The notes beneath the pieces are model-generated. The model was not told the DNA's origin. It was given only the letters and a program-made list of their open reading frames with translations, and searched no databases. This document shows positions 26,901 to 49,700 of a DNA stretch of 64,000 nt, in pieces. The DNA comes from Gekko japonicus (taxonomy: Eukaryota), in contig NW_015171566.1 of NCBI RefSeq assembly GCF_001447785.1, forward strand, positions 3,568 to 67,567, written 5' to 3'. Both the position numbers and the translations under genes were made by a program. Each line of letters begins with the position of its first letter. Position 1 is the stretch's first letter.

Positions 26901-28576
26901 ATTTGACAGGTGAGGCATCAGAACGTGAGTGGTGCTACCGAGGACAAGACCCAAGCGTGTCTGGGAAGTGGATTGCAAGTGTTCAGCCTCTGTGAGGCAG
27001 GCGCTTGCAATGCAGAGAGTGTAAATATTATTACTTTCAGTTTCTATACCGATCGAACCCCGAAGGGTCTCTGAGCGGTTTACATACACAAGTTAATTGC
27101 CTATCTAGGGCCACATTTTTACATCGGGAAGTGACTGCCTACCGGCACCCAGGCAGCAGTGCTCTGTTGGTATTCGGCTCCCCACCTTGGTGCCCCCTGG
27201 CACTCTTCCTGGCACCCGCCGAGCGTTTTCAGAAGGAAGGTGGGGCTTTTGCCTAGCTAGTCTTCTGATGGGCAGTGCAGATTTTAAAAAATGTTGCGAA
27301 GAAGAAGAAGAGTTGGGTTTATACCCTGCCCTTCACTTGGTGTCTCAGTGGGTTACAAACTCCTTTCCCTTCCCCTCCCCACAACAGACAGCCTGTGAGG
27401 TAGGTGGGGTTGATAGGAGGAGGAGGAGGAGAGGAGATTGAATTTATACCCCGCCCTTCACTTGGAGTCTCAGAGCGGCTTACAAACTCCTTTCCCTTCC
27501 CCTCCCCACAACAGACACCCTGTGAGGTGGGTGGGGCTGAGAGAATTCTGACAGAAACTGCTCTTTTCCAAGGACAGCTGTGCCAGAGCTTGTGACTGAC
27601 CCAAGGTCACATCAGCAGGTGCAAGTGGAGGAGTGGGGATTCAAACCCAGTTCTCCCAGATTAGAGTCCGCACACTTAACCACTACCACTTAACCAGTCT
27701 GAGAGAACTGCTCTTGAGAGAACAGCTCTGAAAGAACGTGTGACAGGCCCTGGCAATGTTCCCTCTAAGCCGTGGAGTCTTGTGAGCAAGAATTCTACTT
27801 GGTGAGCTACTGGCAGTAAAGTTGTGAGTGAGCCATTTGGCTACTGCATCAATGAGTTTGCTCTGCAGCCCTCCTTCCTGAGCGAAGACAAAAATGTGTG
27901 AGCCGGAGGCTAAAAACCTGTGAGCTAGCTTACACTGACTCAGCTTAGAGGGAACACTGGGCCCAAGGTCACCCGGCTGGCTGCCTGTGGAAGAGTGGGG
28001 AAATCAAACCTGGTTCTCCAGATTAGAGTCTGCCACTCTTAACTACTACACCAAACTTTGGCAGCAGTTGCCACCACAGTACAAAGGTCTTCACCGTGTG
28101 AGGGGAGGGTGAGCTGCAGCAGGCATTGTGTGGCTGGGTCCGCCTTCTGCGGCAGCCATTTTTATTGCAGCTGTGCCCGTCACACACAGTCAAAATGCCA
28201 AAGGTGCCCAGAGGCTCAAAAAAGTTGAGGACCCCTGGCGTAAAGACATAGTACTGAGTGGGGTTCTGGGACGGGAGCATTTTCGATTTAATAGGCAGGA
28301 CCCAGGATTGCGATAACAAGAAACTTTCTCCCGCAAAAGGGCGTGCAACACTGCTTTCCCACGGGGGGTGCCGTAACACATTTTGGAATGCTGGTTCCGT
28401 TCCATGAGAACTGGAGGCAGAACAGGCGTGTTAAAGAGGAGGGGATCCTGCGCACCCTTTACTCACCCCCATCCCCTGCTCTCTCCCATCAGGTGCTCAC
28501 TGCGGCTGGAAGCAGCCACCGGATCGACGTCTTCACCAACTTCAGTTACCGGGCCTTTTCCCTCACCTTCACCTAG
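20917..28576 (+). CDS. THOC6: THO complex subunit 6 (WD40), coding exons 20917-21032, 21125-21189, 21704-21807, 21896-21933, 22033-22081, 22175-22246, 22764-22866, 23720-23769, 25165-25227, 26337-26447, 26655-26783, 28493-28576; about 327 aa
   Basis: Translation [57 protein letters not shown]...[12 protein letters not shown]...[24 protein letters not shown]...[16 protein letters not shown] matches THOC6. All introns are GT-AG and phases are consistent (984 nt). A short upstream coding exon cannot be excluded. Confidence 0.95.
23160..23365. mobile_element. ~206-bp hAT-type MITE (TIR CA(G/A)TGTTCCCTCTAAGCTG); other copies ~2232-2438, 25907-26112, 27753-27959, 34512-34717, 46354-46559, 47451-47654, 61317-61521
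   Basis: Near-perfect TIRs; 8-bp TSD gttaggac (23152-23159/23366-23373) and cctctgag (25899-25906/26113-26120). Confidence 0.88.
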
Positions 28577-29758
28577 TGCTCTCCCCTGTGCCTTCTCTGT
28601 CTCTCTCTCTCCCTTTGGGTAAAGCTATTTCTAGTCTGGTATCAGAACAGGGAACACCTGGGCAGATCCACCTCCTCGGGATCGGCTGCTTTTGGCGAGC
28701 GTCACCTATCTGTGCCGCCCAGTTAGGAAGAGCTCTCCTTCTCCTCATGCTTCCCGGGGAGCAAAATTTCACAAGATTTGTGTGCCAGTGACATTCAGCC
28801 TTTGTTGCACCCAGAATTGCCACCCCTTCTGCAATCGACAGTGTCAAACTTTGGAGCTCTGGGGTAGAGCAGCCTTTTTTTTGCTCACCCAAGCCTAAAG
28901 CTTGGCCTCTGGTGCTGATTGGCGGCCTGTGGGGTCTAGGCCTGCAGGGAGCTGCACACATAGACCTATCTCTGAGTAGTACAGCACAGTGGGAGGGATC
29001 TTTACCTCTCCCTTCAGTGCTGGTTGGAGGAATACGTGGCTTTCAGCATGCATCTCCAACCCGGTTTTCACTGCCTGTTCCCAGACGTTATAAGCTATGG
29101 AACACCCCTTTGCAAATCAAAGGGACCTGAAGGTATGCAGTTAATCGGGATTAGAGGAAGTGTTTTTCTTCCAGTCCTCAGTAACACCCCCCTTTCCCAG
29201 GAGTCTTATCATTTCAAAAGGACCAGAGCTCTTAAAAATTTATGGCATCTTGAATTCCAAGAGGGGAGTAAATTTCAGCGCTCTCCCCCCACTATGGTCA
29301 GTTCACATGGTCTGAATAAGGCCTGTTCCCTTCCCTCCTCTGTTTTCTGTCTTCCTTTCCTTTTTTTTTTAACTTTCCAACTTGTGCTCTACTGCCTTCA
29401 ACATTCGATACCACCTGGAGTGTATGAGCATGCTCAGTTGTCACTATGTACCATAGACAGGAATGCATTAAATCGCTCTCAAACTGAAATGCCATTACAA
29501 GCAACTTTTGTTGTGTAATTGATGTGTTTTCAATGGACCTAGAGGCGGCGGCAAGGGTGCGGAGAATTCCACTGTCTGGAAGCCCTTTAATTGTTTCTGT
29601 TTCAGTGTTCTGTGCACCTGCATGGCTTTAAGGTTTTTCTTCTGTAATCCCGAGGACTGGAAAGAAAACAGTGTGGTCCTCAAAACTCTGGGAAAGCGAA
29701 TGACAGAAAGAGCCAGTTCTGAACTTCAGAACAAGCACAGTTACTTGGGAGTCTTCGC

Positions 29759-32700
29759 TCAGGACTCCAGCCCTTTTCCTCCACCCACTTCCACCTCCTC
29801 ATACATGTGTTCCTCCTCCATCCTCTTAAGCTCCTTCAGATCTTCCCGATGCTTTTCTTTAAACTGCTGGAGAGCCACCATCTTCTCAGGGCCTTCACCG
29901 ACACCGCGGACCCCTGGCTGGCCATCCGGAAGCAGGTATCCCACCACGTCGGCCAGCATGGCTTCAGCTTCATGGCGGAGGGCCTGCAAGGCTAAGGGCC
30001 CATAGATGGTGGGGCCAGATTTGTAGCCCTTGCTGAAGAGGTTGACGGGCCGCAGGAAGTAGTGAGGCAGGTTGCCTTTTGCGAGGGTGTGAATGAGGAT
30101 CTTCAAGAGATGCTGCACTGAGGACAGCAGAGTTTCCCAGGGTGCCTCCTGAGGGTAGATTTCACAGCACCACAGCAGAAGGGTCTGCAGAAAATGGAGG
30201 GGGAAGAGAGATGTTAACCCGATCCCACAGTCACCATTGGCAGGGGAGGCCCCACAACTTCCAAATGCGTGAATGGCGTTTAGGGGGCTAGGTGGGTGTG
30301 CTTCGATATCAGGGACTGTGGGGAGGGAACTGGGGTGTCCGTGCACAACAGACGACTAGTTAGCGAGGCTGAGAGGAAGAAGAGTTGGATTCATACCCTT
30401 CACTCAGAGTCTTAGAGCGGCTTACAATCGCCTTCCTTTCCCCTCCCCACAACAGACACCCTGTGAGGTAGATGGGGCTGAGAGAACAGCTCTGAGAGGA
30501 CTGTGACTGACCCAAGGCCACCCAGCGGGCTGCACGTGGAGGAGTGGGGAATCAAACCCGCCGGTTCTCCAGTTTAGAGTCTGCCACTCTTAACCACTAC
30601 GCCAAAGGTGATTATACAGTCGAGGTCAGCAGCTGGCATTCTTCAAGAGCGGTGTCTCAGGCAGCGTGGAGGGAAGGGTGAGAGGAAAAGAGTATGGGAT
30701 GAAAAGATGGGGGGACCCCAAGAGGAGCTGGTGGGGGATATTGCTGGTTGGTCATTTTGAAAAGTATGGATTGGGGGGGGGGGGGAAGCTGCCTTTTCAC
30801 ATCCATCAGTAAGCACTGCACTTGCATCAGGCGTTTATTCCCGCCGCCCCCCGCTTTGCCATGCTGTCTTAAGGGCTAGAAACACGCTTGTGCTTTAGCT
30901 GAAAGACATGATCAGGCTGCCCAGCACAAGTGGACAAAGAAAGGATTGCTTCATCTACCCCCCCACCCCCACCCCGGCACTGCATGATGGGTTTGCTTGG
31001 CAGATTCACCTTGAGGTGGTAGGAAGATAAGAGCTTGCCGTATTCTGGCCTCCATCTTGTACTGCTGACAAACTTCAGGAGTCTCAGAGCTGCCCGTCTC
31101 TGTCCCCCATCAGCATCAACGTCCTTTAGAAGCGCAGCCTCGGCGTTGCTAAATGAGAGCCTAGGCACAGAGAGCGAGAGAGAGAGAGGTCGGGAGCCTC
31201 CTGTATTCTTGGCAATGCTTCACTGTCCTGCTACTTTAGTTTCATGACATCTTAATGTTCCAGAGGTAGGAAAGACCCCCAGTCCTGCTCTAAGCGAAGG
31301 CAGTCCTCCCATGCCTTCAACAGCTTGTCTACGTGGCACCTCCAAACCAGAGAGAATAATGGATGCCTCTCTAGAAAGCAGACCAGTAGAAAACTCTATG
31401 GCATGCATCTATGATTTCATTGTCTGTGTCAGTGGAAATGTTTTCCTGTCTGTAAAGAGGGCGTGTAAATTGTGAATGAGAGTCCTCCCCCTTAGGCATA
31501 ACCTCTGCAGAGGTACCCACCTGTGTCCACCTGCGGTCATAGGAAAGCTGGGGTAGTGTGGGGTTATCTCTGCAACCCCCCCCCCCCCCACACACACACT
31601 TGATTCTGGCAGAGTCACGGGAAAAGCTGCCACCTCCTTTGAGGAAGATGCACTGTCACTGTGTTTGAAATTTAATTTGGAGTGGAGTTAGTTCCTCTGG
31701 CATATTCTTTGGCACTTGAATTCAGCTTGCGATAAATTAGAATTTAACTTTAGGCATAGATGTTCTCAGGCATAGATGTCGTTGCAGTTAAGGTCCAAAC
31801 CAGTTGTAATCCAGGCACCTATCTGTTATTCAGCAGNNNNNNNNNNNNNNNNNNNNNNNNNNNNNNNNNNNNNNNNNNNNNNNNNNNNNNNNNNNNNNNN
31901 NNNNNNNNNNNNNNNNNNNNNNNNNNNNNNNNNNNNNNNNNNNNNNNNNNNNNNNNNNNNNNNNNNNNNNNNNNNNNNNNNNNNNNNNNNNNNNNNNNNN
32001 NNNNNNNNNNNNNNNNNNNNNNNNNNNNNNNNNNNNNNNNNNNNNNNNNNNNNNNNNNGGTGCCGGATTTCTCATCGCACTAGAAACGAGTGCACGGATC
32101 CCCGGGCAGCGCTCAGATGAAGGAGCTTTACAACAAGCAGGGTTTCGGATCCTGAAATGAGTCCGGTAATTTAAAATCGCTTAACTTATCTGAATGAAAT
32201 TTTTCTTCAAAGAATCCTTTTAAGTCAGATTTCAAAAGCAAAAGCATGAAGAGCCAAAAAGTCCTAATTCTGAAATTGTACAAGGCTCTGTTTTCTCTGC
32301 CAGATTTTCTTTAGCGTCACCCTCCTGATCATCACCCCCTCCCCAGTCCATCTTCCCAAACAGATCTGTTTGTCCTTACCTCCAAAATCCACCCTTGGCT
32401 ACCAGGTCCGGCCCGACCTCCTGCAGAACAGCCACTTTCCGGAGGAAGCTCCTCTTCTCGTTGGCCAGGTCCCCAGCCCACCAGTCAGAGAGGTGAGTCA
32501 GGTCTTCCCTCAGCCACTGGTTGGAGAGCTTGAGGGCCCCCTGGATGGCTGGCACCAGCTTCACGGGCACAGCCTCGGGCCCTGCGAGGAAGGACAGCTG
32601 GACGGCTGGACGCAGGGCCTCTAGCTGGGTGTCCTCTGCAGGGAAATCGGACAAAACGTCACACCGGTGAGGGGCGGCAAAAGGACCTTATCTACTGAAT

Positions 32701-35700
32701 GTATTTCTAAGCAATCCTCTCCTGCTTTTCTGTGTATGTGGGGGGGTGGGGGAGATGGCCCTGGCAGCACAGCCAAAAGTAGTAAGGGAGGGGCCATGGC
32801 TCTCCAGTGGCAGAGCCTCCGCTTGGGATGCAGAAGGTCCCAGGTTCAATCCCCGGCGTCTCCAATTAAGGATCAGTTTGTTGGTAATGTAAAAGACCTG
32901 AGACCCTGGAGAGCTGCTCCCAGTCTGAGTACACGAGACTGACCTGGACGGACTAAGCCTGTGATTCACTATAAGGCAGCTTCGTGTACAGTAACCACAT
33001 ATCAGGCCCAGCGCAACTGTCAGAGAAGACATCGTTCAGGATCTAAAAACCAGGTTGAACAGCTCCATCTTCCTACCTACTGCTGTGTCAAGGGACACGT
33101 TTGGACAATCTTTTGTGGAGGCCACCCCCAGCAGTGCGGCACCCCTGCGCTGAGCTTTCTGGTACCCACCTGGGCAACTTACACTAGACCCATCCTATCT
33201 TTCTGCTTCCACAGATCTTCCAATGTGATTTAAAATACCTCTTTAAAACTGGCCAGTTAATTGTTAGATGAAGGCTGCTGCCAGGTTGTGAAGAGTCTCA
33301 ACTGCTCGGTGGAAGATGTTTTCTGTGTTAAGAAGGGACCGGCAGTAAAAACTCACGTCTCATCCAGGGGGTGATGGTGGGCACTTTGGGCGGACGGAAC
33401 CTTCGCTGGAAAACAGGATCTAGCAAATGAAAGAAAACCAGCATCGTATTAGATCTCAGACTGGTTTGATGTTGAATGTTGACTGTATAAAAATCCCCAA
33501 ATGAGAAGCAAGCACCTGGAGACCTCCTCCAGCTCTAAGGGGTTCCTTTCTGCCCCTCCTCCCAGCATAGTTTCTTATCCCAGTGGTGGTGGTAGGAAAA
33601 TCTCTTAAAAATCGCTTTCCACTTACCATTTTGCAGAGGGTGTGAGTACGCTGGAAGAGGCATGAAAGAGAGAAACATGAGAAAATGGTTCAAAGGAGAA
33701 TTGGTTGCTGGTGATTTTATCCCCAATCTATTTTTCCTGGCAGGACTCCTTGTGCCTTTAGACCACCGCATTGGGTGGAAATTCAACAGGTGCAGCTTTT
33801 CTAGGCAGAATAGTAGAGGGCTGTTGAATTTTTGCCTGCAGTTTAACTGCTAAAGGCCTGGGAACCTTGTTCAAACAAAGGCTGAAATTCGAATATCTCT
33901 TGGGGGGGAGCGGGGTGTACTTGGAGCAAAAACATCCGTAAGCATGGGCTTTCCCTGGAATTGTGCTACGGGGAGAGAGGGGTAACAGGAATTGCAGAGT
34001 TTACCCTTCGAATATCCATTCTAGAAGGATATGCTGTGGTGTGTGAGCCAAGGGATTTCTCTGCAGGGGAATGTACCTGGATCCAAAGCAATTTCGACGT
34101 AGCGGTGGAAGTCCTTCAGGGTTTGGACAGGGTCCAGGTTGTGGTGTTTGAGGCTCTCCTGGTAAAGAGAAGGGGGGGGAGTTAGAAGAGGAGGAGGAGG
34201 AGCCTGGATTTATACCCCGGGCTTCACACAGAGTCTCAGAGTGGCTTACAATTCCCTTCCCTTCCTCTCCCCACAACAGACACCCTGTGAGGTAGTTGCG
34301 GCTGAGAGAGCTCTTTTCGAGAACTGCCCTTGAGAGAACAGCTCTGAGAGAACTTGTGACTGATCCAAGGTCACCCAGCCGCTTCCTGTGGAGGATTAGG
34401 AAATCAAACCCGGTTCTCCCCAGATTAAAGTCTGAGCTCCTAACCACTACAGTTTGGAAGTGTTCCTAAAACAGGAGGCTGCAACATACAGACCTTGGTG
34501 GGGGTGGGGAGCAGTGTACCCTCTAAGCTGAATCCGTGTGAGCTAGCTCACACTTTCTTACCCTCCGGCTCACATATTTTTGTCTTAGCTCAGGAAGGAT
34601 GGCTCCAGAGCAAACTAATGCACACAGTAGCCAAACTGTTTGCTCACAACTTCAATGCCAGTAGATCACAAAGTAGAATTATTGCTTACGAGACTCCACA
34701 GCTCAGAGGGAGCATCTGTGGTGACTGCAGTCCCTGGCCAGGAGAGGGCGCCTCTCAGGGGAGCCAAGGTCATTCTGTAGCATCCCAGTCAACTATGGGA
34801 GGAAGTTTAGATGTCTTGCAGCGTGACTGTGTGGAGGGAGGCCTCCTGCAGCCCACTGATGCCCAAGAAGAAGAGATTGGATTTATACCCCGCCCTTCAC
34901 TTGGAGTCTCAGAGCGGCTTACAAAGCCCTTTCCCTTCCCCTCTCCACAACAGACACCCTGTGAGGTGGGTGGGGCTGAGAGAGCTCTGACGGAAACTGC
35001 TCTTTTTCAAGGACAGCTGTGCCAGAGCTTGTGACTGACCCAAGGTCACATCAGCAGGTGCAAGTGGAGGAGTGGGGAATCAAACCCGGTTCTCCCAGAT
35101 TAGAGTCCGCACACAACCACTACACCAAACTGGCTCTGGCATATTTATTTATGTTTATCTACAGCCTTTTTTCCCTCAGTGACTCAAGGCGGATTACACA
35201 ATCAAACCCATCACAGCTGATAGGATGAGGGGACGTCTAATAAACAGTGTAATAGGAGTCCTAGGGTTGCAGAAATCTGAAAAAATTGTTTAAATGTTAA
35301 ACAGTGCAAGACTGGCATTACGGAAGCAGGAATTGTAACACAGTGAGAGCAAGATAAAAACATACAGCAATAGATACTGCATGTCAGGACTATAGTCCAC
35401 AGTCCCATTTTCTCTCCATTGAAACATCTTCCTGGATCATTCTAAGGTATCCCTGGTGCTTTATAAAAATGCCCTCCCAAACAGTTCTGTTTTACATTGG
35501 CTGCCAAAAGTGTTGGAGTCTTCCTGAGCTCCTTAGTCAGGCCATTCCGGGGGGAGGGGGGGGACTACAGAGAATGATCATGTATGGGCAGTTGTTGATC
35601 TTGCCCATTTGCAGGGTGGTGACTGCAGAAGACCCTGCTCAGGTGAGCGCATTTGTTGTGGTGGGGCCTCGGAGGAGAGACCATATCCATCTGTTTGAGT

Positions 35701-38572
35701 CCTATACCACTGTCCAGAAAGAGGAACAGAAGGGGGGCTCACTCAATGGCAAGAGTAGCCTGGAATTTGCATCTGTGTCTTCTAAAGGCCCTTTCACACA
35801 TTACGCACTGATACCCTCCATAGAGAGTCGTAGCCCTGGCTACTCGCTAAGGGTGCGTTTGCAAACATTAGTTCATATACAGTGTATCAGATATGTATAA
35901 AAACACATAAAACTTTATTTACAAAAACAAAGGACAAACAACACATAGATGGGGGAAAGAATGTGTACGGTTCAGCAAGTAATGCAAAGCAAAACAAAAA
36001 AAAACCCTTGCTGGCTATTTTTCTCATTACTTTTCCTATCAGGTGCATAGCCCTAGCATCTCAACTGGCATTCCTTCTCTGGGAGCATAGCAGCAGGGTG
36101 GAAGCTGAAGAGAACTTCAAGGCAATCTCTTCTCTTTCTGAGTCTTCTCAAGCCATCTATTCTACATAGGTGTTCTTAACTATTTAGCCAATAGAAAGTT
36201 GTTACCAGGATAGACCTCTAAATTGCAAGCTATCAACCACTCTAGATGACAGTTCTCAGCTGCCGCAGGTTAATAACTTCTGCCAGCCTAAGCAACAATT
36301 CTGATAACAAGCTGGCAGGTGGGAGTAAGCAAGAAAGCTAACATTTAGGCAGAAAAACTCTCTTAAAGGAGACCAGTTTCTTGACACAGAGTTAGAAGGG
36401 ATCCTAGAGGTCACCTACTCCAACTCCCTTGCCTCAGTGAGGGAACTGGTCAACTACAGCACCCCTCTCTGCTTAAAGGAGTACACACTCCTTTAATGTT
36501 TTTAAATGATTGAAAAAAGCATTTGCAGGAGAATTTCTTGTGGGGCTGTGCCTTTAAGAAAGGAGGTGGAGCCTCCAAAAGCCCCACCATACAGGCCTGG
36601 TTTATCCTCACTTTTTCACTATTTTTCAAGTTTGCACTTCAACCACATTAGGCATATATGTAAAAACTGAATCAGCTGTAGGCAGAGTGGCAGCAGCTGG
36701 CGAATGAAGGAGTTTGTAAAGTGATTAGTTCCTGATGGCTTTTTTCAGGGCAATCTCTTGCACAAAAGAAGACACAGGCTTGCCCCTATGTATCATAAAA
36801 AAGGTAAAGGTTCCCTTGCTCGAAAGCCAGTCGAATCCGACTCTAGGGTTGCGGTGCTCATCTCCGTTTCAAAGCCGAAGAGCCAGCGCTGTCCGAAGAC
36901 GTTTCCGTGGTCATGTGGCCGGCATGACTAAACACCAAGGCGCACGGAACGCTGTTACTTTCCCACCGAAGTGGTCCCTATTTATCTACTTGCAATTTCT
37001 TGCTTTCGAACTGCCTGGAACTAGAGATGGGAGCTCACTCCATCATGTGGCACCCGGGTCTCGAACCGCTGAACTACTGACCTTCTACAGCCTGCAGCCC
37101 AGCATCTTAACCACTTGAGCCACCGCAGCTCATACTATGTGACAAAAGCATGCTTATCTCACTGCACCTATTGTAATATCTCCCTTTGGCTGTCGGTTCC
37201 CAGGTTAGAGCACTCACCCAGGCACCCGCTCTCAGGTTCATTCAGCAGAGACAAGCGGGCTCAGAACACCAGGCTTTTCTTTGCAAGGAGACAACACCAA
37301 CAACTTCCGCTAACATACAAAACTAGAAACTGAAACAAGAGCGCCACCCAATAGGACCAAACTAAATCACACATATTGGGGGGGGGGGGGGGCACTGCGT
37401 TGCTTGACAAAAAAAAACATACATAAATATGTACAATAAACCCAGGGGTCATTTCGTAGAAAAAGAGGTGCAGGAGCTCATTAGCATAACTCATTAGCAT
37501 AACATATTTGCATATGCCACACCCCCTGACATCACTGGAAGTGTGTCAGAAGGCAACACCCACCGCTCAGGCTCCACTGGACTGTTTTGGATTGCTAGCT
37601 TTGGGGGGGGGGGGTGAACGTGGAGATCTGTCCTCACGAGGAGGGAGAGCTTGTACCTAAATAAAATTTGGTCTTAAAGGTGCCACTGGACTGTTTTGGA
37701 TTGCTAGCTATGCACAGATCTGCCCTCACAGAGGAGGGAGAGCTTGTACCTGAAGGCCGCTGGGGAGGGAGCTCTGCAACTTACCTGGCTGTTTATTGCT
37801 CCTAGTGGCCCAACTGAGGGCTGCTGGGAGCAGGGGGCGGGGCTTGTTGCATGTGCCCGCCCCCTGGGCTCCTTACTGCCGGAGCTCCGCTCCTGTGCGC
37901 TCCTGCAGGAAATGACCCCTGAATCCACACCTATGATGGTTGGGCATCTGGCACTCATGTTCTTGCCCCAGAATGGGCCCCATCTGTCCCAGTGCACACA
38001 CACCTCCATATCTGTAACCTGGGAAGCCGCTAGCACATTATACAGGCAAAAAGTTCCCAAATAGCATCTGGGAAACCGACCTTGTACTCGTCCAGTTCCT
38101 CCAAGTCGAGGTCGTCATCCTCCAGCCAGGCTTTTTTATGATGGCAGTGGACTTCCACGTGGGCCTCTTCGGCAGCCTCCAGATCCACGAGGATCTTCGT
38201 GCCCCGGCGGCACACGGGCACCCCCCTGTCGTGGAACATGTAGGTAGGGAGCCTCCGCTCGTAGCGGCTCGGCGGCTTGGCGAGGCCCCCACTGACGAGG
38301 GCCAGCTTCGGGTTAAATCGTACCGGGACGAGGAAGTCGAAGCCGGCGGGGGAGCCTTCCGGCTGGAGGTGAAGCCCTTCCCTGTAGCTGCCCACGGAGA
38401 CGGGGCTCTGGGGGTACAACCCGCTGCTGGACTGGTAAGCCCATTTCACGATCGAGTCCACGAGGCTCTCCACTGCGGAGAAGGTCTCCGCCACTCTCCG
38501 CTCCCGGCCCCCAGCGAGGAAGACGCGGCTGGCATAGAAGTGCTGCAGACGTTTCTCCGGCTCCTCGCCCAT
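29759..38572 (-). CDS. Mab-21 domain / cGAS-like fold protein (MAB21L3-like), exons 38572-38081, 34158-34077, 33419-33357, 32635-32380, 31160-31010, 30184-29759; 489 aa
   Basis: NTase-like VGSYREGL..GFDFLVPV, LDPVQTLKDFHRYVEIAL, PAVQL..VPVKLVPAI, and the Mab-21 C-lobe WRLSFSNAEAALLKDVDADGGQRRAALRLLK..LSSYHLKTLLLWCCEIYP..W..LPHYFLRPVNLF. Phases 0/1/1/2/0 join into an open 1470-nt frame with a good Kozak context (gcgATGg). The 63-nt exon 3 is the least certain. Confidence 0.87.
36800..37130 (-). mobile_element. Sauria SINE (intron 1 of the Mab-21 gene)
   Basis: Near-identical to the 3289-3642 copy. Confidence 0.85.
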
Positions 38573-38881
38573 CGCCGTGGCCTCCTGGAAAGCCTCCCTG
38601 CCCTGTTGTGTCTTTATCTGGCTCTGCTGCCCCCTCGCTCCACTTTCGCTTTCCCTCTCGGCCCCGGCCCCTCCTCCCCGGCTGTTTATCCACGGAGGAG
38701 TCTCTGCTCGCTGCTTGGGGAAGGGCTGGCTGGTGACAGGCAGAGGAGAGAGGCGCAGATGCCAGCTCTTGGGACTGTTTCGTCTGGAGACGAGGAGGGG
38801 TGGGGGGGGGGATGTGATCGCTCTCATGAAGTATTTGGCCATCGATCCAGGGGAGTTAGCCTGTTAGTCTGTTGCTGCAAC

Positions 38882-43720: not shown

Positions 43721-46700
43721 TCATTGTTCTGTGTCCCAATGGAACCCAATGGCATCGATCGAAGACCCCGAACGGCCGCTGACAGAGCGCAGAACCGTGT
43801 TTGGGAACGAAGGCTCTGCAGTGAAGAACGTCCCTGGGCCGAAGTTGGGTCCAAAGGCAAAGACGCGGCCTTGGTTGGTGCGGAGGGCGAGATACTCCAC
43901 GTGGCTTCCAAAGCGGCCCAAGACCTGGACGATCCCCTCTCCGAGAAAGAGCCGGACGTTGGCGGGGCTGCCCACCATCCCCCCTTCCGTGCTGGACCAG
44001 GAGTCTCCGTAGCGAACCTGGATGCTAAGTTGGTGAAGGAAAAGACAGTATGATTTAGGGGAGGCATCTTTTCCCGGAGAGAGGCCGAATGTGATTCAAC
44101 CGCAAAAATCAACAGGTTATGCTTCTCCCAATGTAGAGCAGTTATAGGGTTGTTGTTTTTTAAATTATTGTATTCATTCACTTTATTTATACCCCCCTTT
44201 CTCCCCAGGGGGAACCCAAGATAGCTCATATTGTTCTCTTCTCCTCCCTTTAAACCTCATAACACACTGTCTGCAGTGCTTGAAAATCTTTGCATAGGGC
44301 ATTTTGGAAAACACGGCGTATTTCCATAAACTCCTTAGTCCAAACATTGAATGGATTCTATAGGGAGGATCCCTGCCCCCTTTAATCAATCTGAACTCCT
44401 CCTAGTTGTTAGAGCAGGATGTCCAAACACCTGATCAATGAAATGCTTTTTTAAAAGTGAAATTCGGAAACAAGCCTCCATTGGTTTATTTTTAGAGTCT
44501 GAAAGGGTAATGCACCCTCCAAGGAGCTCTCTCTTTGCATTGTCATGGAGGCAGGCTTGATTGGAAAGAGTGACTCATGCAGAGATGTGACAGGCAGCCT
44601 CCATTGAGGGCACATATTTATGCTGTGCCTCTTCATCAGAGGAGATCAAACCATCCAATCGCAAGCAAGGCAGAGCGAGGGCAGAATTACCTTTTCTTCG
44701 GGAAGGCTTAGAAGCAGGCAAGCCTAGAACAACAAATCATGCAGAGATTCTGCAGGTAGCCTCCTCCATGACAGACTATTTGGGGCTTACAGAAAGCTTT
44801 ATAAAATTAATACGTTCCAGAACAGCCCGGGACATGGCCAAACCCCGCTTGTGGCATTACTGCTTCGGAATTGCTCCATTGTGCCACATGTAGAGTGTGA
44901 CGCCCTGAGGGAAGGGTTGGGGGCCCCTATTAATTTAGAGTTACAACAAGCAAGCACATCCCGCCCAGAGACAGAGGGCACATCTTGCCCTTTAAACTAG
45001 GCCCATCCAGTACACTAGTTCAGGGGGCAGGGAGCTGTCCTTAAGGGAGCTCTGATTGGTCAATGGATCCATAAGACTCCACTGACCAGGCCTGTCACTC
45101 TTTGTTCTTTCAAGGGGATCAGGGCGGGTCAGATAAAAACTGACCAATCAGGGACGCTCTCAGAAAAATTGAAGGGCCAGCAAGCCCCAATGAGGTCGTT
45201 GTCCTGCCTCCTTCAAGCCTCTGTGCCCCCCCCCCCCATGTGCCTATTTGGTCTTCCTTAGTCCAATTCAGGAGGAAGTACTGTTGCCAACCTCCAGGTG
45301 GGACCTGGAGATCTCCAAGAATTACCAGTGTTCTCCAGAGAACAGAGACCAGTTCCTGCGGAGAAAATGGCTGCTTTGGAGGAGGGGGGACTGTATGGCG
45401 TTATACTCTGTGGAGGCCCCTCCCTCCCCAGGCCCCTCCCTCCCCAGGTTCCACCCCCAAATCTCCACGAATCCCCCAGCCTGGACCTGACATTCCTAGG
45501 AGGCAGCCATTTTCTGTTAAGAGAGGAATGCAAGATGTGTGTCTTATAATTAATTCCTGCAGCTGGATTATGGAGTTGCCCACTTTGGGCTGGGAAAGTC
45601 CTTGAGGTTGGAGGGTGGTTCCTGGGCAGGGCAGGGCAGGGGTTGGGGAGGGAACTCAGTGGGAGTAGACGGTCACAGAGTCCATCCCCCAAAGCCGCCT
45701 TTCTCTCCAGGGGAACTGATCTCTGTTGCCTGGAGGTCAGTTATAACTCCAGGGTGCCTTCAGACAACCCTGGCTCCAGGGCTCTTTTTGTAGAAAAAGC
45801 CCAGTAGGAACTCATTAGCATAATAGGCCACACCCAACAGCAGGAACTCATTAGCCTATTAGGCCAGACCCCTGATAGCACAGCTCATTAGCATATTAGG
45901 CCGCACCCCCATGTTACCAGAAGTGTGGTCATCCAGCCAAACCCACCTTTTGCTTCTTATTCTGTTGACCTTGTTTGTTGTCAAACCAGGGCTCTTTTTG
46001 TAGCAGGAACTCCTTTGCATGTTAGGCCACACACCCCTAATGTAGCCAATCCTCATGAGTTTCTGCTGTCGGGTGTGGCCTATTATGCTAATGAGTTCCT
46101 GCTGGGCGTGGCCAACTCGGGAGCCAGCCGGAACTCCGTTCCTGTGCGTTCCTGCCCAAAAATAGCCCTGCCTGGCTCTAGCATCATTACAATGGAGGGG
46201 GATAGGGGACAAAACCAGAATTGGTGGGCTCTGCCCACCACTGACTGACCTGCTGTCTGCCCCATCAACCCCACTGGGTACCAGCTAGCTACCACAACTT
46301 CCACCCAACCCCCCGCTGGGGCTCCTGACGTACGGGCCACCCAGGGTCTAAAGCAGTGTTCCCTCTAAGCTGAGTTAGTGTGAGCTAGCTCACAGTTTTT
46401 TAGCCTCCAGCTCACCTATTTTTGTCTTAGCTCAGGAAGGATGGCTCCAGAGCCAACTAATTGATGCAGTAGCCAAATCACTCGCTCACAACTTTAATGG
46501 CAGTTGCTCACAAAGTAGAATTTTTGCTCACAGGACTCCACAGCTTAGAGGGAACATTGGGTCTAAAGGCACACTTACCTTACAATATATCTGTCATTTG
46601 CCCTTATCCTCAGGCCCGTAATGGGACCCTCCAGCTCCTGATCCGATTGGTCAAAATGGCTCCCAGCATCACTTCCAAATTCTCCAGAGTAAGAGGAGGA

Positions 46701-49700
46701 GGCCCTTGTCTGGGCTGGGTTTATAAAGGGAAGATGGCAGGTTATTCAGTCATTTGTAGCTCTGCTCTCCCTCCTGAGTTGCTCTGACACATCCTCTCAC
46801 CTGTTTGGGCCAGTTTGGTATAGTGGTTAAGTGTGTGGACTCTAATCCAGGAGAACCGGGTTTGATTCCCCACTCCCCCACTTGCACCTGGCTGGATGAC
46901 CTTGGGCAAGCCGTAGCTCTGATAAGAGCTGTTCTTGAAAAAGAGCAGTTTCTGTCAGAGCTCTCTCAGCCCCACCTACCGCACAGGGTGTCTGTTGTGG
47001 GGAGGGGAAGGGGAAGGAGTTTGTACGCCGCTCTGAGACACCTTTGGGTAGTGAAGGGCGGGGCATAAATCCAAACTCTTCTTCTTCTTCTTCTCACTCT
47101 CTGTGACTGGTCGTATGCGTAGTAATCTAAAAAATGTATATTTAATCTTGATCTCTCTGTCCTGTCCACGGTGCTGTCTATGACCTTCTTCCAGTGCCCT
47201 ACTGTTTGGGATACCATCTAGGCCAGGGGTGTCGAACTCATTTGTTATGAGGGCCGGATCTGACATAAATGAGACCTTGTTGGGCCGGGCCATGTTTGTC
47301 ATAAAATGTAATGCCAGGTAGCGGAGATATAAACTTTATAAAGGACACAAACACGAAGGGGTTTTTTTAAACTTAAAAACATGCTTAAAACATTAGCACT
47401 CTTGCTCTGAATTATTGCATCAAAATGTCTGTGCTGTTGCAATCTTGACTCAATGTTCCCTCTAAGCTGTGGAGTCTTATGAGCAAAAATTCTACTTTGT
47501 GAGCTCCTGGCATTAAAGTTGTGAGCAAGTGATTTGGCTACTGCATAAATTAGTTTGCTCTGGAGCCATCCGTCCTGGGCTAAGATAAAAATGTGTGAGC
47601 CAGAGGCTAAAAAACTGTGAGCTAGCTCACACTAACTCACTTAGAGGGAACACTGATCTTGAATATGCTGTTCAGGTGTGTATCTGTAAGCTGCAAACCT
47701 ACAATGATGCAGCAGCAGCAGAACTGGAAGAAGAAGCAGAAGACAGCCAGTTCCACTGTGGGCTTGATAGAAGCCCTTAGGGGGCTGCATGTTTGACACC
47801 CCTGATCTAGGCACTGCAGTCTTCTGGAATGATTATAGGCATGGGATCTGATTTTTACCTGCTATTGTTATTTCTTGTTTTACTGTTTTAATTGCCGTTG
47901 TTTTTATGTTGTGAGCCGCCCCCCCTGAGCCCATTTGGGGGGGGGGTATGGCGGGGTATAAATTTAATTCATAAATAAATAAAAGTTGCTTCATAATGAC
48001 AGAATTGCTTCTTGTCAAGCGCTGCGGCTCCTCTGCAAAGCGGCCTTCCAGAGGCCTCTTTCTCTTGGGCCCACATCCAGAGATTTTGTGGAGCACTGCC
48101 TGAAGGCACGTGGAGTGCAGAGGGAATACTTCCTACCGACGCCAATGCTAAACAGCAAAAGGCTAAACACGCCTTGATGAAAAGCACTTGGTAATCGCTT
48201 AAGTCAGGTGCCTGGGAGCGACTGATGTGGTACACCCAGCCCTGCCCGCAAGCCACATGTTAATGTGTTGCCATCAAAGGAGCCCTCCTCCCATAGGGTT
48301 GCCAACTCCAGTTTGGGAAATTCCTGGAGATCTGGAGGAGTGACACCTGGGGAGGGCAGGGGTTTGGGGGTCAGACAGGGACCTCAGCAGGGTGCAGTGC
48401 CAGAGAGTTCCCCCCCTGCGAAGCAGCCCTTTTCTCCAGGGGAAGGGACCTTTGTTGTCTGCCAATGGATTTAAATCCCAGGAGGTCTCCAGGTCCCACT
48501 GGAGGCTGGTGGCCACCCTATTAAAGCTGTGCTGTTAGCGGTGGCCTTGGTGCGGAGACCTTGGCAGGTGACAATATCAGTCATACAAGCCACGAGAAAC
48601 CTCCCCTGCTAATTTCTGCAGATCTGAGTTGCCGCAAAAGGCACAAGAGGGTGTAGGGTTGGGGTTCCTGGTCCTTCGGCAGCCCTAGAGGCAGCGGAGC
48701 ACTTTCGGTTTCAAAACGGGTGTGACTAGGCTGCTGCGGGTGGTGGGGCCAATACACTCCCAGAGGAAGATGAAGAGAAGAGAAAGAAGAGAAGAGACTG
48801 GATTTATACCCCGCCCTTCACTCAGAGTGGCTTACAATCTCCTTTCCCTTCCTGTCCCCACAACAGGCACCCTGTGAGGTAGGCGGGGCTGAGAGAACTC
48901 GGAGAGAACAGCTCATGAGAGAACTGCTCCTGAGAGAATAACTCTGAAGGAACTTGTGACTGACCCAAGGTCACCCAGCAGCTGCATGTGGGGAAGTGGG
49001 GAATCAAACCAGTTCTCCAGAGTAGAGTCCGCCGCTCTTAACCACTACACCAGACCGGCTCTTAAGATCCAGCGCAGGTGGGGAGTAATGTTAAAAAGGC
49101 ACTGGGAAAGGGGAGTGAGAGACAGAGAATAAATAAAACGTTGTGATGGCAGCTGCCGCCAAATCAATGTTATTTTCGTCTGCACAAGCAGCCGGTTCTC
49201 CAGTGGCCAATCAGAAGGTGTACTAGGCAAGAGCTACAGCTGTCCCCGCCCCCCTTTCCGCAAACACTTGGCGAGAGCCAGGTCAGGTGCCGGTGGGACC
49301 AGTATTCTATAGCCTCCATCTAGACTTGAGCCCCAGAGCGACTGGTGAGCACTGCCCTGTGCTGGTGCCACCGCCTCCAATGAGGTCGATTTAATATTGG
49401 TATTTTGGTCTCTGGGTATTTCTTACTTGTCTTAGGGAGCATGAAGCAGGTTGCAGGCCTTGCCTCGGACGCACACACCGGTGCTCCAGGTTGCAAACGG
49501 CCACTACTTTGCTAGGAGGGCTCTTGATCCCTCAATGCACACTGCGCTTGACGGAGGGGAGGGGATGGAGCCCGGGGGCAGGGCAAGTGTGGTTAAGAGG
49601 ACACAGGGTAGTGCCCTGGCCTGGATCGTTCAGGCAAGCCCAGTGGTCTCGCCAGATCTCAGACGTTAAGCAGGGTCGGCTCTAGCAGATATTTGGATGG

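Follow-up and report, generated by a model that had tools for sequence, protein, structure and literature searches.

A candidate pseudo-nucleotidyltransferase gene of the Mab-21 fold, beside THOC6 in Gekko japonicus

Few cGAS-fold genes are recognised in vertebrates, and to our knowledge each of them is widely shared. cGAS itself carries a zinc thumb, H(X5)CC(X6)C, between its WRLSFS motif and the next helix. MAB21L1 and MAB21L2, developmental genes of one exon each, occur in every vertebrate and are extremely conserved, and MiD49/MiD51 (MIEF2/MIEF1), TMEM102 and ITPRIP are Mab-21-fold pseudo-enzymes that serve as adaptors, MiD51 being a protein that binds a nucleotide. Here we describe a gene of this fold from a 64,000-nucleotide (nt) stretch of Gekko japonicus contig NW_015171566.1 (hereafter the window). 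The gene lies on the minus strand next to THOC6, spans 38572-29759 from an ATG at 38572 to a TGA ending at 29759, and has seven coding exons (1494 nt) whose product is 497 amino acids (aa) long.

On balance, we favour reading this gene as the gecko member of a single-copy squamate/turtle Mab-21-fold family that is a paralog of MAB21L3, with the gecko copy a soluble pseudo-enzyme. A gene model already exists in RefSeq as LOC107117610 [Gekko japonicus] (P0028), a 587-aa "uncharacterized protein", so the gene is not new; the lineage has never been studied in the literature searched, where we found nothing on a reptile Mab-21 clade or on the LOC identifiers. An earlier sequence-only reading of this locus had called the lineage probably uncharacterised, which stands for the literature on these loci and fails for their annotation, as LOC107117610 and models in about 25 reptile species exist. 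The family adds a squamate- and turtle-confined cGAS-fold clade that is absent from the consulted tables of the largest published census of cGAS-like receptors (cGLRs).

Fold, range and probable paralogy with MAB21L3

We defined the superfamily by Pfam PF03281 and PF20266 (the Mab-21/cGAS fold), and the gecko gene is a member of it by Pfam, PDB profile and fold. The LOC107117610 database protein served as reference for full-length work. It matched Pfam Mab-21_C at 1.3e-16 (61 bits, cut-off 24.1), as did exon 7 alone at 9.4e-12, and it matched the Mab-21 nucleotidyltransferase (NTase) domain at 3.4e-5, with 24.4 bits against a cut-off of 24.1 and over the second half of the profile only. Thus, both the NTase lobe and the Mab-21 helical lobe proposed from the sequence were recovered. 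A family profile searched against the PDB found cGLR1 (8.5e-16), mouse and pig cGAS (about 3e-13 to 7e-12) and MAB21L1 (5eog, 6.3e-11), and more weakly human cGAS (about 1e-8 to 1e-7), MB21D2 (4e-7) and MiD51 (3.5e-4), all of these matches running through the helical lobe. Single exons were less informative in PDB phmmer searches: exon 7 gave weak matches, with cGLR1 at 0.018, and exon 1 gave chance matches only. In Pfam, Mab-21_C was the sole family matched by single exons. A predicted model of the Lacerta ortholog aligned with cGAS in Foldseek at an E of 2.5e-8 over about 460 columns. Language-model features placed exon 1 among the Mab-21 NTase clusters; the whole protein fell nearest to a mollusc cluster and to vertebrate TMEM102/ITPRIP clusters (0.95-0.96), which we take as a lead only.

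The best PDB matches in sequence and fold, cGAS, cGLR1 and MB21D2, have in common with the gecko protein the GS loop, the second Asp, WRLSFS, SYHLKT and PHYF. Unlike cGAS and the cGLRs, the gecko protein has lost two acids, lacks the zinc thumb and a basic N-terminal tail, is acidic overall, and has its motifs at a different spacing. The missing thumb had been noted from the sequence and was borne out: exon 6, LSFSNAEAALLKDVDADGGQRRAALRLLKF, contains no His/Cys cluster, and alignment with cGAS requires a 9-12 residue gap at that place. With no H(X5)CC(X6)C in exon 6, a cGAS ortholog was ruled out.

By Kyte-Doolittle hydropathy the protein has neither an N-terminal signal peptide nor a transmembrane anchor; its maximum 19-residue mean is 1.07 and lies within the beta-sheet core, not at the N-terminus. 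A membrane protein was ruled out on that maximum. Squamate members are acidic (isoelectric point 5.1-6.6). Among features peculiar to the family, conservation is strongest in LSDWW, LPTY, ESLxHHNLDPVQILKDFH and the C-terminal helix FKEKHxEDLKELKRMEDEHMYEEVE.

The family is narrowly distributed. A HMMER search with exon 1 (164 aa) against 1.84 billion representative proteins returned only 12 matches at E<=1e-3, those named coming from Lacerta/Zootoca, Protobothrops and the turtles Pelusios, Dermochelys, Caretta, Gopherus, Malaclemys/Terrapene, Pelodiscus and Eretmochelys. The same taxon range emerged from a word search with the full-length Lacerta protein (26 matches) and from a profile of 23 members (33 matches). 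Orthologs are thus known from about 25 squamates and several turtles, covering lacertids, Rhineura, Hemicordylus, Elgaria, Varanus, agamids, Anolis, geckos, many snakes and turtles. Neither HMMER with exon 1 nor the word and profile searches turned up a protein from birds, crocodilians, mammals, amphibians or fish. Identity to the gecko protein was 87% in Gekko kuhli, 80% in Paroedura, 57-66% in other squamates and about 43% in turtles.

In a maximum-likelihood tree, geckos, snakes, lacertids, agamids and turtles were each recovered, with one copy per squamate and, in turtles, two paralogs, the second of them divergent, that duplicated within the turtle clade. The distant outgroups P0043 and P0048 sat on branches too long to root this tree. 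A Pelusios castaneus model (P0006/P0017; P0010 and P0011 were also noted) fuses both turtle units into 1038-1177 aa, which suggests that the turtle paralogs are tandem genes. Archosaurs, and not squamates, are the nearer relatives of turtles; as both squamates and turtles carry the gene, the common sauropsid ancestor had it too, and birds and crocodilians must have lost it or hold it unannotated. A duplication in the sauropsid stem followed by archosaur loss fits these data as well as does the loss in mammals that had been proposed from the sequence.

The described gene that invites closest comparison is MAB21L3 (C1orf161). A reptile ortholog of MAB21L3 (or of MAB21L4/C2orf54) relocated beside THOC6 would agree with the names "protein mab-21-like 3" or "C2orf54-like" that several members carry in NCBI/UniProt, and with a helical lobe in which WRLSFS...DADGGQRR...SYHLK...W.CE.YP is close to Varanus MAB21L3. 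Over the stretch of the Varanus entry from WRLSFS to the W after CE.YP, a count by eye and without a tool gave 26 ungapped identities in 68 positions, including a common D-x-D-G-G-x-R turn; the resemblance to MAB21L3 noted in the sequence-only reading thus holds for this lobe. The N-terminal half tells against orthology. Table S1 of Li et al. 2023 (PMC9980059), in the part available, gives as MAB21L3 the proteins XP_044308377.1 of Varanus komodoensis and XP_038228246.1 of Dermochelys coriacea, and the N-termini of these are entirely unlike those of the family members from the same species, P0035 (Varanus) and P0007 (Dermochelys). Nor did the exon-1 HMMER search return a MAB21L3 of any species at E<=1e-3.

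Varanus and Dermochelys, the species looked at, each carry both genes by these entries, so the gecko-type gene is not their only copy, and the squamate/turtle family is therefore, on sequence grounds, best regarded as a paralog and not an ortholog of MAB21L3. The separateness of the lineage that had been proposed from the gecko DNA is accordingly upheld within the range of the Table S1 entries consulted, and a relocated MAB21L3 ortholog appears very improbable. Both genes have the Mab-21 fold without a zinc thumb, the D-x-D-G-G-x-R turn after (W)xLSFS, a similar helical lobe, an incomplete active site and several exons. They differ in that MAB21L3 is a separate gene in Varanus and Dermochelys, with an N-terminal lobe that shows no HMMER-detectable similarity, whereas the gecko-type protein is about 130 aa longer, has an acidic insert and a conserved C-terminal helix, and is encoded next to THOC6. 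The name 'mab-21-like 3' should not be applied to the squamate/turtle family.

Other relatives are less alike. MAB21L1 and MAB21L2 resemble the gecko protein in fold and in uncertain catalytic status, whereas the gecko-type gene has seven exons, is fast-evolving and is restricted to reptiles. With MiD49/51, TMEM102 and ITPRIP the likeness is by features or weak profile only, and the gecko protein, unlike these, has no membrane anchor or signal peptide.

Active site and proposed role

The active-site motif of cGLRs is given by Li et al. 2023 (PMC9980059) as h[QT]GS X8-20 [DE]h[DE]h X50-90 h[DE]h. The gecko protein has G77, D79 and K246 at the three acid positions and has thus lost two of the three metal-binding carboxylates, the first to G77 and the third to K246. 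Its G77-F-D79 departs from the first acidic pair [DE]h[DE], its V-K246-L departs from the third acid h[DE]h, and the acid motifs lie about 165-170 residues apart, against X50-90 in the published motif. The assignment of these positions comes from an HMM alignment, with N-D-F-D-F of the family opposite N-E-F-D-V of mouse cGAS, and from hhalign, with V-K-L-V-P opposite A-D-L-V-P of an intact invertebrate cGLR-like protein (P0043). The sequence-only reading had placed the gene in a cGLR-family lineage; the Mab-21 fold is there, and the published active-site motif, from which the gecko protein departs at G77, at K246 and in spacing, does not support a cGLR.

No member of the family alignment departs from the GS loop or from the second Asp (D79). 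At the third position nearly every squamate has K, with N instead in Hemicordylus and Elgaria and R in Anolis, whereas each of the four turtle-type sequences (Natator, Dermochelys, Gopherus and P0040, a Logan sequence) has D. Snakes, Rhineura, Pogona, Gekko kuhli and turtles have D at the first position and others G or N, so that turtles keep all three acids (D-F-D ... V-D-L). The simplest history suggested by this alignment is that the third acid was lost in the squamate stem, where K would have arisen, and that the first then drifted (D, G or N) through repeated, independent losses. Such a pattern would mark a site that has dropped out of catalytic use.

An active cGAS-like receptor, which would convert recognition of a pathogen ligand into a nucleotide second messenger acting on STING, is quite unlikely in our judgement. 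It would suit the cGAS fold, the invariant GS and second Asp, the three acids of turtles and an element upstream of the gene that resembles an interferon-stimulated response element (ISRE; see below). It is opposed by G77 and K246, which in the gecko stand in place of two of the three acids, by the lack of the third acid in every squamate sampled (K, N or R), by the out-of-range motif spacing, and by a protein that is acidic, not basic. The cGLR census of Li et al. 2023 (PMC9980059) also counts only 2 cGLRs per turtle in the tables consulted, and the unusual spacing may itself explain that count. In the part of these tables consulted we found no entries for Anolis, Gekko, Python, Pogona, Podarcis, Thamnophis or Notechis, an absence that may be an artefact, and the Varanus MAB21L3 was the only squamate entry found.

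As a pseudo-enzyme, the 497-aa gecko protein would be unable to catalyse nucleotidyl transfer and would act as a soluble pseudo-nucleotidyltransferase, a ligand binder or adaptor in the manner of MAB21L1-3, MiD49/51, TMEM102 and ITPRIP. Because the GS loop and D79 never vary in the family, its ligand could be a nucleotide. Protein contacts are probably made through the conserved acidic C-terminal helix, and the conserved Tyr in the acidic context of this helix might, more speculatively, be a phosphorylation or SH2-type site. The ancestral protein may have been enzymatically active, and the present turtle proteins, which keep D-F-D and V-D-L, are perhaps still enzymes; these turtle proteins are candidate orphan cGLRs. 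The complete triad of turtles, set against the squamate Lys at the third site and a drifting first site, makes the family a tractable case of passage from enzyme to pseudo-enzyme.

A bolder history would place the family with cGAS and MB21D2 as a third cGLR lineage of vertebrates, one that arose no later than the sauropsid ancestor, is still active in turtles, where it duplicated in tandem, and became a pseudo-enzyme under interferon regulation in squamates once Asp had changed to Lys in their stem lineage. We think this rather unlikely; if true, it would offer a natural before-and-after pair in which a nucleotide-signalling sensor became a non-catalytic adaptor.

Several observations weigh against the family and the pseudo-enzyme as we read them. 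The absence outside reptiles was obtained with the fastest-evolving lobe as query and with word filters. The fold comparison used an AlphaFold model of the Lacerta ortholog built from 23 sequences, with a mean predicted local distance difference test score of 55, and serves for fold assignment only. Indications of the nearest paralog diverge: language-model features point to TMEM102/ITPRIP, PDB profiles to cGLR1/cGAS, and names and the by-eye comparison to MAB21L3. The invariant GS and D79 could, from the alignment, sustain residual one-metal chemistry. The runs X1-X4, on which most of the splicing data below draw, are guessed to be RNA. Lastly, purifying selection on the gecko gene is weakly indicated: between the window and the mapped runs there were 13 coding differences (6 synonymous, 7 non-synonymous; sites 200 and 628), a ratio of non-synonymous to synonymous polymorphism (pN/pS) of about 0.37 that comes from 13 sites only (one-sided binomial p = 0.07) in runs that may mix individuals.

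Gene structure and transcripts

Exons were located by reading the sequence and by tblastn mapping of the Lacerta ortholog (P0004), and splicing was followed in Logan contig sets X1, X2 and X4, guessed to be RNA and coming from three studies, and in raw reads of X20, a run recorded as RNA-seq, all mapped on 29500-34400. Coding exon 1 (38081-38572, minus strand, like all that follow) encodes 164 aa with the start ATG, the N-terminal helices, G61-S62 and G77-F-D79, and ends in the donor AAG/gt at 38081/38080. Orthologous exon-1 open reading frames end at the same codon, exon 1 is present in 19 runs from 7 studies, and at the joint between exons 1 and 2 an X1 contig continues for 192 nt beyond exon 2, with one mismatch at the border. 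Exon 2 (34077-34158; 82 nt, ESLKHHNLDPVQTLKDFHRYVEIALDP) was placed by tblastn with the Lacerta ortholog and by an RNA joint from 33650 to 34077.

Exon 3 is a 24-nt micro-exon at 33627-33650 that encodes AYSHPLQN, the counterpart of EYTHPRQN in the Lacerta ortholog. It is preceded by AG and followed by GTAAGT, and its two joints, 33419 to 33627 and 33650 to 34077, occur in X1 and X2 and in 1-2 raw X20 RNA reads. The six-exon, 489-aa frame read from the gecko DNA alone had overlooked it. That model had the start, the stop and its six exons right, and without the micro-exon these make 1470 nt (489 codons and a stop) in the same frame with GT-AG at every border; the RNA joints give seven exons and 497 aa.

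Exon 4 (33357-33419; 63 nt, DPVFQRRFRPPKVPTITPWMR) is joined to exon 5 from 32635 to 33357 in X1 and X2. Exon 5 (32380-32635; 256 nt), with joints at both ends, encodes PAVQLSF...VPV-K246-LVPAIQ and the LSDWW motif, the K246 codon lying at 32561-32559. In run X2, one allele of this exon has 9 nt inserted in frame behind 32602 (CGGCTGGAC, plus strand) and several substitutions nearby; the insertion site is where lacertid orthologs carry three more residues. Exon 6 (31010-31160; 151 nt), which runs to SSYHLK, is bounded by the joints 31160 to 32380 and 30184 to 31010. Exon 7 (29759-30184) encodes the last 141 aa and the stop, with the Mab-21_C helices, LPHYF and the acidic C-terminal helix ending in MYEEVE.

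A run of N at 31837-32058 marks an assembly gap between exons 5 and 6. The joint from 31160 to 32380, which skips 1219 nt bounded by GT..AG on the minus strand, was seen in X1, X2 and X4 and in 3 raw X20 reads; it thus passes over the gap in four runs, in frame, making ...GGFW-R/LSFSNAE... (the WRLSFS motif). The gap is therefore intronic and conceals no coding sequence, and a hidden exon at 31837-32058 was ruled out by spliced RNA that is continuous and in frame across both sides. The joint 30184 to 31010 was present in X1, X2, X4 and X20. RNA junctions thus support the exons that had been proposed, joined at GT-AG sites in contigs of three studies and in raw reads.

All exon translations are letter-identical to the LOC107117610 protein and in the same order, micro-exon included, with exon 1 corresponding to residues 91-254 at 100% identity. 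The first 90 residues of that model come from an in-frame open stretch, 38573-38842 on the minus strand, whose ATG at 38842 is the RefSeq start and which is probably 5' untranslated region (UTR). We prefer the start at 38572 because orthologs begin at the equivalent position, without the upstream 90 residues, because the Kozak context of its ATG is the better of the two (G at -3, G at +4), and because the extra 90 N-terminal residues matched no Pfam family. The RefSeq start thus probably lies 90 codons too far upstream, and 38572 was taken as the start. Downstream, a probable 3'UTR of uncertain extent (28226-29758, minus strand) is drawn from the X1 contig and poly(A) hexamers.

These structural data bear on whether the gene is decaying or non-functional, its transcripts being noise. 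The lost catalytic residues, an NTase score barely over the Pfam cut-off, the 7 non-synonymous polymorphisms and the in-frame 9-nt indel allele would all suit decay. They are countered by the intact 497-codon frame with seven correctly spliced exons, by pN/pS below 1, by an X1 contig depth of 98, and by a reading frame that is intact in every squamate group sampled and in turtles, with 50 invariant columns. On the intact spliced frame and intact orthologs a pseudogene was rejected, and we hold decay to be the least probable of the readings weighed here.

The introns contain repeats at 30320-30647, 32780-32943 and 34256-34400 whose summed depth in RNA contigs and reads reached about 1e5, with many back-joints between 34374 and 30529. 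These are copies of an abundant, transcribed interspersed repeat resembling a short interspersed nuclear element.

Genomic surroundings

THOC6 lies on the plus strand, where an exon at about 21.7 kb matches PDB 7apk_F (5.6e-14); more of its exons can be seen near 22.8 and 25.2 kb. With the Mab-21 gene on the minus strand, the two are placed tail to tail, as first described from the sequence. The X1 contig reaches at least 1274 nt below 29500, that is at least 1.5 kb beyond the stop toward THOC6, and poly(A) hexamers occur on the minus strand at 29591, 28292 and 28166 and on the plus strand at 29467 (ATTAAA). The convergent 3'UTRs of THOC6 and the Mab-21 gene may overlap.

On the other side, a Jacalin-domain exon (43724-43978, minus strand; Pfam 4e-6), read from the open reading frame 43721-43978, closes a ZG16-like gene that shares the strand of the Mab-21 gene and lies upstream of it; this agrees with the neighbouring lectin gene proposed earlier. 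In human 16p13.3 the order is HCFC1R1-THOC6-BICDL2 with ZG16B nearby, and the neighbourhood therefore looks conserved apart from the Mab-21 gene.

An element resembling an interferon regulatory factor element (IRF-E) or ISRE, GAAAGCGAAAGT, lies at 38642-38653 on the minus strand, 70-81 nt upstream of the start codon. The 64-kb window holds 3 such dodecamers against 0.22 expected, a number that 0 of 100 shuffles reached. The upstream element hints, by its sequence, at possible interferon or immune control of the gene, and we regard it as a lead only. The other two exact dodecamers are at 27033-27044 and 48701-48712, both on the minus strand (GAAACTGAAAGT, GAAACCGAAAGT); the one at 48.7 kb stands in a GC-rich stretch and may be part of another gene's promoter.

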